Shown: in pieces, positions 29,691 to 32,600 of the stretch
How the letters are laid out: every line of letters starts with the position of its first letter
Numbering within the stretch: position 1 is the stretch's first letter
Assembly: GCA_964035545.1 (NCBI GenBank)
Contig: OZ037765.1
Coordinates: 24,117,504-24,181,503 of the forward strand
Direction of reading: 5' to 3'
Length of the DNA stretch: 64,000 nucleotides
Source: Bugula neritina
Taxonomy: Eukaryota > Animalia > Bryozoa
The notes under the pieces: model-generated
What the model was told of the DNA's origin: nothing
Databases searched by the model: none
Seen by the model: the letters and a program-made list of their open reading frames with translations, nothing else
Translations under genes and position numbers: made by a program

Positions 29691-32600
29691 TTATTTCTTG
29701 TGTTGTGATGCATCTTTTCTAGGAGGCATACGCTCATTAGTTTTGTCTAAACTTCGGGCCTCCTCAAAGCTGGCGATCCTGTGATTTGGAGACACTCCAC
29801 TGACAGCTATAAAATATCAAAATGTTTTTTATTGTAATGTTACAACTACTGAAACAGGTGTTGCAAACATGCCCATAGTCAACCAAATTGTTGACTAGAA
29901 GTTCCACAACATACAAACTTCATACTAACTGGTAATTATTCATCTTTTAGGAATCACAACATAAATTAATTAAACAAATAAGCACGAGTTGAGGTGTAAT
30001 TTAAAAAATCTACTAGAGTCGATATGATACATATGCAACTTCAACCATTTACAGACGCATAAAATTAGCTTTTGCCAGTTAATGCAGCGGAATGCACTTC
30101 CTAAAAGGTTGAAGTAATCTATTCCTACGATGCCCAACATCTTGTAGTTGCACACATTGATAATAAACCACAAAGTAATATCTATTGTCCAATATCTACC
30201 ATTAGCCATAGTCTCTTTTCCTCCTGATAAAACACCAACTGGTAGCATGCCATTTGGAGTAAGACCTTTAAGCTGCAAGACTGTCTCACTTTCTTCCCTG
30301 TAAATAACGACGGGAGCCTATACTGATCTAATTTCCTAACACTGCATTGAAACGGCTAAGAGCATAGAATATATACCATATTTTAGAGAACACAATTAGT
30401 ATCTGAAAAAGAAGCAGGAACCTGAAAACATCTTGTATCAAGCAAATGCACCAATTAATATCTTTAGGTAGAGGGCTATAAATTAACCAAGTTTACTAAA
30501 TAATCTGTTGGATAATTTTTGTGAAAGACAAAAACAATATAGAAGTATAAATCACTTACTTAGCTGGAACCAACTAGAGTATGAGTGATAGTTATTGAAA
30601 TGTGAACAGATTGTAACAAAAAAGTAAGTAACAGAACAAGCAAATAGAGAAAGCAGATAGAAGCTGTTGATAAATGAACAAGGATAGAGAAAAGAGAGAT
30701 TGGTGACAGACATACAGTACCTGAGTACTGAATATACTTTGAGTAATTTGGATATTGCATTGATTTTACGCCTCATTTCTTCCCTTCTATTGTTCTTAGC
30801 AGTTCTAAGCAAAGCTGTAATGATTATGCAAAGAGAGTGAAAAGTCAAATGTAGCATAGACACAGATGCAAAGAGGTTGAAGAAATGTGGAGAGAGAAAA
30901 TAATACACAGTGGTGGTGGTGGTGGTGGGAAAGGGTACAGGCAGCGTTGGAGGATTGTTCAATATACCTGAGTACGGTGAACACCCTTGCCATTTTTCCA
31001 ATAGCTCTTATCTTATTTCGTATAACCTCTCTGCGGGCAGCCATTGCCGCTGCTGAAAGTATAATCGAAATATAATTATAGGAAGGAACACATTTTCACC
31101 AACACTGAAAGGGCGAACTAGGAAAACGATCACAAAAAGCATCAGAACCTCTGGCTCCTTACAAGCAATACACCAACACATTTCGACATAATGGTTGATC
31201 ACTAAGCAGGCATGACTACAGCCAATTCAGTGGGTTACTCAGGCCACGCTATAAGTTAGATTGAACATCTCAGCATGCAAAGTCCTAACACCAAATAACA
31301 ATATTCTACAAAGCAAAGCATTAGGCAGCAACACTACAACAACAAATATTACATGAGCCTTCAAATGTTGAGTGTTCAGATGTCATGGTTTGGAATTGGC
31401 CAATAGAAGTCAACAAAGCTGGTGAGTCTTGGTAAGAGCGCCATCACTACACACACCAACACTCACACACAATGAATAAGATCAATGACTTCACACCAAC
31501 CACATCAATACCAACAGCACTTACTACGGCTTGGAAGCCGCATGGAGGATGGTGAAGAATGACTAGAAAGGTCAGTGCTCGGCCATTTTTTTGAATCACT
31601 AGAATAGCCGTCAGAGTTGACAGCAGAAACTAATACAGCTGTTGATGCACCTACAATTGTCACATAGGAGACACATTGATACACCATGCTTAGTCTAGAG
31701 GCAAGCACAGTACACTATCAGTAGGTACACATGCATACACAGTTATGAGCAACGAGAGTCGTAATATGTAGATTACTCTAATGTGTAGGAGATAAGCAAA
31801 AAGGGTGATGCCTCACGTGTGCCATCAATGTCATAGCATGTTGAGTGCAGGAAGGGAGTTGTGGGCATCAACTAACTAACACAAACATATGGCAAGAAAA
31901 GGTCAAACACAGCTGTCACGAGAGTGGTTATAAGGCGATATAAAAACACATCTTTGTTATTCTCTACACTTATAAGCGCATGATTATGTGACCACCAAAT
32001 ACAGGTTCTGCCATGAAAAAGCAGAGGCCTGATTGTGGGTGTGGTCAAGTATCAGGATGAAAAAGTCAAAAGTTTACCTTTTTTACTAGGATCAGTTTCA
32101 ATGTCATCATCACCTAAAGTTAAATTCCCAGATTAGTGATATTATTAGTTGGCCATATCAGTAGAATAGTGTTAGTGAACAGTGAAAAGCTAGAACTACA
32201 ATTTAAGATTATGATTATACTCCACCTATTAGTGTTATCTTCCCTTTACAATTGACTCTGCATGCCCAAATGCATTGATTCAATGCAATGATAAAGGATT
32301 CCCTACGGCTTAGATATTATTTTACAATGCACGAGTGGAGTTATAGAGAAGATAACCCAAAACATTACGCCTTTATGGAAGTTACTAGAGATGATGTACA
32401 ACATTCAAGTCAGAAGTGAGTTTCAGCATGCCAACATTCCAATCACGTTTAGCTGTTTGCAGTGCACACAGAGAATCAACTGGCCAATCAAAACAAAGCC
32501 AGATGTACCTTCACTTGAGTTATGGGAATGGAGAACACCTTACATATACAATACCTGTCTTTCCTGAAACTTCAATTAAGAATTGATTACTCCTGTCTAG

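Follow-up and report, generated by a model that had tools for sequence, protein, structure and literature searches.

A putative second calmodulin-binding exon, conserved and probably mutually exclusive with the first, in the calcineurin A gene of Bugula neritina

The window, a 64,000-nt stretch of contig OZ037765.1 of the bryozoan Bugula neritina, contains the coding part of a calcineurin A gene on its minus strand. All coordinates refer to this window, and the features are listed in the direction of transcription.

29691–40765, minus strand: coding span of the calcineurin A (PPP3C) gene, exons read by eye
32802–32882, minus strand: exon with the end of the calcineurin-B-binding helix
32078–32113, minus strand: acidic LR1 linker exon, 36 nt, phase 1-1, upstream of exon A; an equivalent linker is seen in transcript L044
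30968–31052, minus strand: exon A, canonical calmodulin (CaM)-binding helix and autoinhibitory segment, 85 nt, phase 1→2 (PDB 2R28, E = 8e-10)
30815–30967, minus strand: intron between exons A and B, 153 nt, 9% G, no internal AG, 9 YCAY motifs
30721–30814, minus strand: exon B, 94 nt, phase 1→2, arisen by tandem duplication of exon A and diverged from it, under purifying selection
30805–30806, minus strand: internal AG proposed as a second acceptor, part of the TAG that stops the A+B message, not conserved
30611–30720, minus strand: pyrimidine/CU-rich tract just 3' of exon B, 74% pyrimidine, candidate splicing-regulator site
30200–30297, minus strand: downstream LR2 exon, beginning with a split Arg followed by EESE; its acceptor is common to A or B
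29691–29806, minus strand: last coding exon, carrying the autoinhibitory domain (AID)

The 3'-end of the calcineurin gene and that of a splicing factor 1-like gene (about 24000–29200, plus strand) lie tail to tail at 29260–29180 with hardly any gap. Other neighbors look ordinary: a TMEM180/MFSD13A-like gene (1886–5329, plus strand), a gene similar to the largest subunit of RNA polymerase III (9900–19000, minus strand), a PhzF-like protein gene (44685–47019, plus strand) and an Lge1/CCDC62-like coiled-coil protein gene (51137–51862, plus strand). The best named match of the TMEM180 protein is from Watersipora subatra, and it groups with Watersipora in a quick tree. An array of 11-codon tandem repeats is situated within a long open frame at 61521–61886 of the plus strand.

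The gene was assigned to calcineurin A by reading its exons, by the similarity of exon A to calcineurin peptides from PDB and by matches of the exons to homologous loci. The catalytic PPP domain, the calcineurin-B-binding helix, the CaM-binding helix and the AID follow each other in this order. The spliced gene model was searched one exon at a time, and exons were joined only to find stop codons. Copies were sought in the B. neritina assembly tzBugNeri2.1 (216,009,554 bases in 321 pieces; published as 216.00 Mb in 320 scaffolds and a mitochondrion, PMC11480708). Only one locus matched at 100%, that is, the host genome has a single calcineurin A gene, and exon B occurs in the genome once. Three further matches to calcineurin A are on small contigs (C204, C137 and C100; loci L002–L004 of assembly G000) and have TAA and TAG codons in frame at Gln-like positions, as in ciliate genes. 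They are probably ciliate cobiont sequences remaining in the assembly.

Exons A and B are homologous neighbors, alike in length and identical in splice phase, each having an AG acceptor and a CTCAG/GTA donor. Their coordinates, lengths, 153-nt spacing, common phase 1→2 and CTCAG donors, as given in the earlier sequence-only reading, were borne out when the sequence was read again. The same is true for the claim that ten residues had changed while the hydrophobic anchors were kept, since in the alignment 13 of 23 residues are identical and 10 differ, and positions 396, 400, 403 and 409 are hydrophobic in both exons. The top PDB matches of B are calcineurin CaM-binding peptides (2R28 and 2JZI), with E-values of 0.026–0.033 that would be weak if taken alone. 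The resemblance is not due to chance, given the position and phase of B, a donor end with 11 nt identical to that of A, and the existence of orthologues. Besides the CaM-binding helix, the exon carries an LxVP-like autoinhibitory segment, overlooked in the first reading; this segment is the exon's final stretch, ARVFSVLR, the placement reportedly being that of Li et al. 2016.

The sequence-only reading had joined the exon ending at 32802 directly to B, having overlooked the 36-nt exon at 32113–32078. Given this exon, the upstream junction is probably 32078 to A or B. A candidate 36-nt exon is also seen at L056:1614. The Bugula exon has the position of the vertebrate muscle cassette exon 10a. 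The LR1 exon may be constitutive or a cassette.

Orthologues of exon B were identified in four other lineages (L011, L012, L039 and L055/L056) by using exon A as the query and then scanning the loci retrieved; none was recovered by exon B queries. These loci are metagenome contigs classed as bryozoan-like by their flanking exons. The classification is based on the identity of the LR2 and AID exons flanking B to those of Bugula (73–94%) and on the placement of a TMEM180 from the L039 sample, which adjoins the bryozoan clade in a tree, on a long branch. In each of the four lineages B follows A and precedes the LR2 exon, with an open frame, the phase 1→2, a length of 91–106 nt, an AG acceptor and an AG/GT donor. 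The A–B introns of these relatives are 74–122 nt long. Vertebrate-like exon A peptides from L019, L022, L030, L046 and L047, possibly human, were present in two bulk screens only and were excluded from later comparisons and counts.

Purifying selection on exon B in relatives had been set as a check by the sequence-only reading, and it was found in these lineages. Between Bugula and L056, pS is 0.72 and pN 0.11 over the last 22 codons of B, with 18 of 22 residues identical. For nine of ten pairs of B sequences, which are not independent of each other, pS exceeds pN at Fisher p<0.05. Synonymous sites of B are near saturation between lineages, and the A–B introns of Bugula and its relatives align no better than shuffled controls. 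The five B copies form one group on the exon tree (SH-aLRT 93, 27 columns). Since the orthologues are open in the same phases, synonymous sites are nearly saturated, introns are unalignable and pN is less than pS, exon B is under purifying selection as a coding sequence in the calcineurin frame, far less tightly than A. It evolves much faster than A, with 8–18 of 22 residues common between lineages.

Five substitutions (human numbering) are fixed in all five B copies and absent from A, namely V395D/E, G404S/T, M406L, A407L and F410Y, Met406 being an oxidation-sensitive residue. K399, V409 and L413 are retained in all five copies, as well as hydrophobic residues at 396 (Ala in L011), 400 and 403. 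The net charge of B varies from +3 to +6, compared to +6 for A. By sequence, B conforms to the 1-5-8-14 type of CaM-binding helix, being basic and amphipathic, with spaced hydrophobic anchors. The fixed changes are shared and isoform-specific, and do not represent random decay.

Splicing of A to B was modeled by joining the exons in a script. The joint message acquires a stop codon inside B in all five bryozoan-like loci, although at scattered positions (codons 3, 8, 14, 18 and 28; codon 3 in Bugula). Because the stop lies well upstream of two further junctions, the A+B message is an expected substrate for decay, and joint inclusion would be non-productive. This supports mutual exclusion of A and B, and the original argument that either exon is in frame while both together shift it holds as the most likely reading.

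The exclusion could also have a steric basis. Long AG-free zones commonly accompany a branch point situated far upstream, and such a branch point could prevent splicing of A to B sterically. In the A–B intron this zone spans 151 nt in Bugula and 39–93 nt in the relatives, and of 2148 windows of 151 nt sampled from the gene, none is free of AG. A single clear branch-like motif was seen, at intron position 120. Simple steric exclusion would require an intron shorter than 153 nt, or else a branch point located far upstream. Frameshift followed by decay is an equal candidate. Pairing of docking and selector RNA elements of the Dscam type, which is not required for this class of exons, was rejected, as only short inverted repeats at chance level and no conserved intron blocks were observed.

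The 110 nt following B contain 71–75% pyrimidines in four of five lineages, placing them in the top 2% of each locus, and the CU-rich tract is seen in three of the four relatives. This suggests that B is a regulated exon. Enrichment of YGCY (MBNL-like) motifs 3' of exon B was not significant.

One related species is represented by transcript contigs (L015, L044, L060 and L061), and in all four exon A is joined directly to the LR2 exon. Hence the A-only message is the main form, with the reservation that these contigs come from one species and that assemblies drop minor isoforms. No transcript or protein with exon B was found among 50% representatives, 90% clusters of 83–264 aa and JGI metagenomes searched by pattern. 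Exon B alone gave no match in Pfam; the blanks obtained with exon B there and elsewhere reflect length and word limits. Given the selection acting on B, we infer that it is used in mRNA.

Taken together, these observations are best explained if B is an old tandem duplicate of A that is spliced instead of A in some cells or stages. We hold this reading, a mutually exclusive alternative CaM-binding exon, with considerable confidence, and exon B is probably functional. The single bryozoan calcineurin A gene would then produce the canonical isoform A by default and a second isoform B, in which both the CaM-binding helix and the overlapping LxVP-like autoinhibitory segment would be rewritten. Exclusion would be achieved by the short G-poor intron with the long AG-free zone, the branch point probably being near the donor of A, with nonsense-mediated decay of A+B as a backup. 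B would be a regulated, normally repressed exon by virtue of the CU-rich tracts on its flanks.

CaM binds the canonical helix at picomolar affinity, in part electrostatically (PMC7456046), and in the resting enzyme the LxVP substrate site is blocked by this same region (PMC7456046; bioRxiv 10.64898/2026.09.10.750614). Being basic and amphipathic and keeping the anchors, the B helix has probably not lost Ca2+/CaM binding. The acidic residue at 395 and the bulkier ones at 404 and 407 would most likely lower its affinity below the picomolar canonical value and raise or sharpen the activation threshold. If B is used, we lean towards weaker CaM binding; the direction of the change is a best guess, as the net charge of B overlaps with that of A. 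F410Y may alter self-occupancy of the LxVP pocket.

Several other explanations were weighed against mutually exclusive splicing of a CaM-binding exon B. Exon B might replace A and yet fail as a CaM sensor, keeping only its C-terminal part, LL[KR]VYx[VIF]LR, as a stronger autoinhibitory or docking element, so that the enzyme would be CaM-insensitive, dampened or dominant-negative. Indeed, residues invariant in B gather in the C-terminal half (K399, L406, L407, V409, Y410 and L413), while positions 392–398 vary widely. This half overlaps the LxVP-like autoinhibitory segment in its reported location. An LxVP-type self-inhibited isoform has a precedent in CNAbeta1 (PMC8523714). On the other hand, none of the five B copies has lost the hydrophobic residues at 396, 400, 403 and 409 or the basic net charge, as expected if CaM still binds, and we regard loss of CaM sensing as unlikely. 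It is followed in the order of alternatives by a poison exon, that is, B included after A, with the premature stop leading to degradation of the message or to a truncated enzyme without the AID. The A+B stops in five of five loci would be accounted for, and a B-only transcript was not seen. At the same time, selection acts on the phase 1→2 frame of B and not on the A+B frame, with pN less than pS in the calcineurin frame, and the stop positions are scattered. We consider a poison exon quite improbable.

A dead or decaying pseudo-exon would fit both the failure to find transcripts with B and its faster evolution. However, frame, phase and both splice sites are kept in five lineages with near-saturated synonymous sites and unalignable introns; such conservation largely refutes decay, which ranks third and has very little probability left. 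It was also proposed by the sequence-only reading that the AG at 30806–30805 yields an 84-nt form of B with phase 2-2, which, when added after A, would give two CaM-binding helices in tandem. This AG does exist in Bugula and the frame is open, but it is positioned 10 nt after a stronger CAG. Moreover, a matching acceptor is absent from the relatives: L012 lacks any phase 2-2 option, and the other relatives have their in-frame AGs elsewhere, most of them in a weak context rich in purines. Hence only the acceptor itself stood, and an isoform with two helices is scarcely credible.

Tandem copies of the CaM-binding exon were also observed in other animals. Crassostrea ariakensis (L063–L065, runs identified from the supplement of PMC8590024) and a close relative (L057) have two 85-nt copies 65–66 nt apart, which encode the same helix with only the first few residues different. 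The oyster pair, located around L064:5053–5288, shows synonymous divergence between the copies; of the last 68 nt, 11 differ in L057, every one of them at a third codon position. Another animal (L058/L059; Logan SRR29726840) has a lightly diverged pair at L058:1614–1835 with 52 nt between the exons, short enough for steric exclusion. A separately diverged second exon was found in one more animal (L021:6565–6682); it has a strong donor and three in-frame acceptors spaced by 9 nt. Only a single copy is present in Taenia solium, in L054 and in 14 further genomic loci covering the intron between A and LR2. The exon tree of 27 columns did not decide between one and several origins of the second copies (p-AU 0.43).

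A wider scenario may be considered, which at present is tentative and which we would not favor. Duplication of the CaM-binding exon would be old or recurrent in spiralians, the copies having stayed nearly identical in oysters and diverged separately in bryozoans and in one other animal. Its bryozoan product would be a calcineurin specific to certain cell types, in which the activation switch is rewired, with low CaM affinity or CaM independence and altered LxVP self-inhibition. If true, this would be the second natural exception to the conserved mechanism of calcineurin activation. It would also be a natural variant useful for studying the reason for the picomolar affinity of the canonical site, a reason termed a conundrum in a review (PMC7456046).

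No report of a duplicated calcineurin CaM-binding exon was found in the literature searched, most subscription papers being outside it, and isoform annotations in databases may already contain such an exon. The helix is almost invariant in animals, and the known isoforms leave it untouched. A natural alternative that is under selection and has five fixed substitutions offers a direct way to learn which residues determine the Ca2+/CaM threshold and LxVP self-inhibition. An animal with one calcineurin gene could, as predicted here, gain two calcium sensitivities. The system of a swappable CaM-binding exon is confined to invertebrates.

Tandem mutually exclusive exons with distant branch points are well known from alpha-tropomyosin (exons 2/3) and alpha-actinin (NM/SM). 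The Bugula exons resemble them in being a homologous pair with the same phases, a short intron, a long AG-free pyrimidine-rich zone and CU-rich flanks. Unlike in these genes, the distant branch point in Bugula is a proposal, and frameshift with decay is equally a candidate. The tax-6 gene of Caenorhabditis elegans has mutually exclusive exons 13a and 13bc, for which neuronal versus muscle use was shown (PMC12503234). As in Bugula, this is a single calcineurin A gene with a tandem homologous exon pair in the regulatory domain. However, the tax-6 exons code for the LR2 linker that follows the CaM-binding domain, and length is the main difference between them, whereas in Bugula the exon of the CaM-binding helix itself is duplicated, with 10 of 23 residues changed.

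Vertebrate PPP3CA, PPP3CB and PPP3CC have muscle-regulated cassette exons 10a (LR1) and 13 (LR2) (PMC5577920, PMC12503234). There too splicing tunes the regulatory domain, and the 36-nt exon of Bugula is at the LR1 position. Unlike Bugula exon B, these cassettes are short insertions before or after a CaM-binding domain that itself stays the same. The interpretation of B as a known linker variant of the LR1/LR2 type was rejected, since the variable segment is the CaM-binding domain. In CNAbeta1, described as the sole known case that departs from the conserved mechanism of activation, the C-terminus is replaced (PMC8523714); there, as predicted for isoform B of Bugula, one gene yields an isoform with altered autoinhibition. 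Thus the class of event is a familiar one, and what is new here is its target, the CaM-binding exon of calcineurin.
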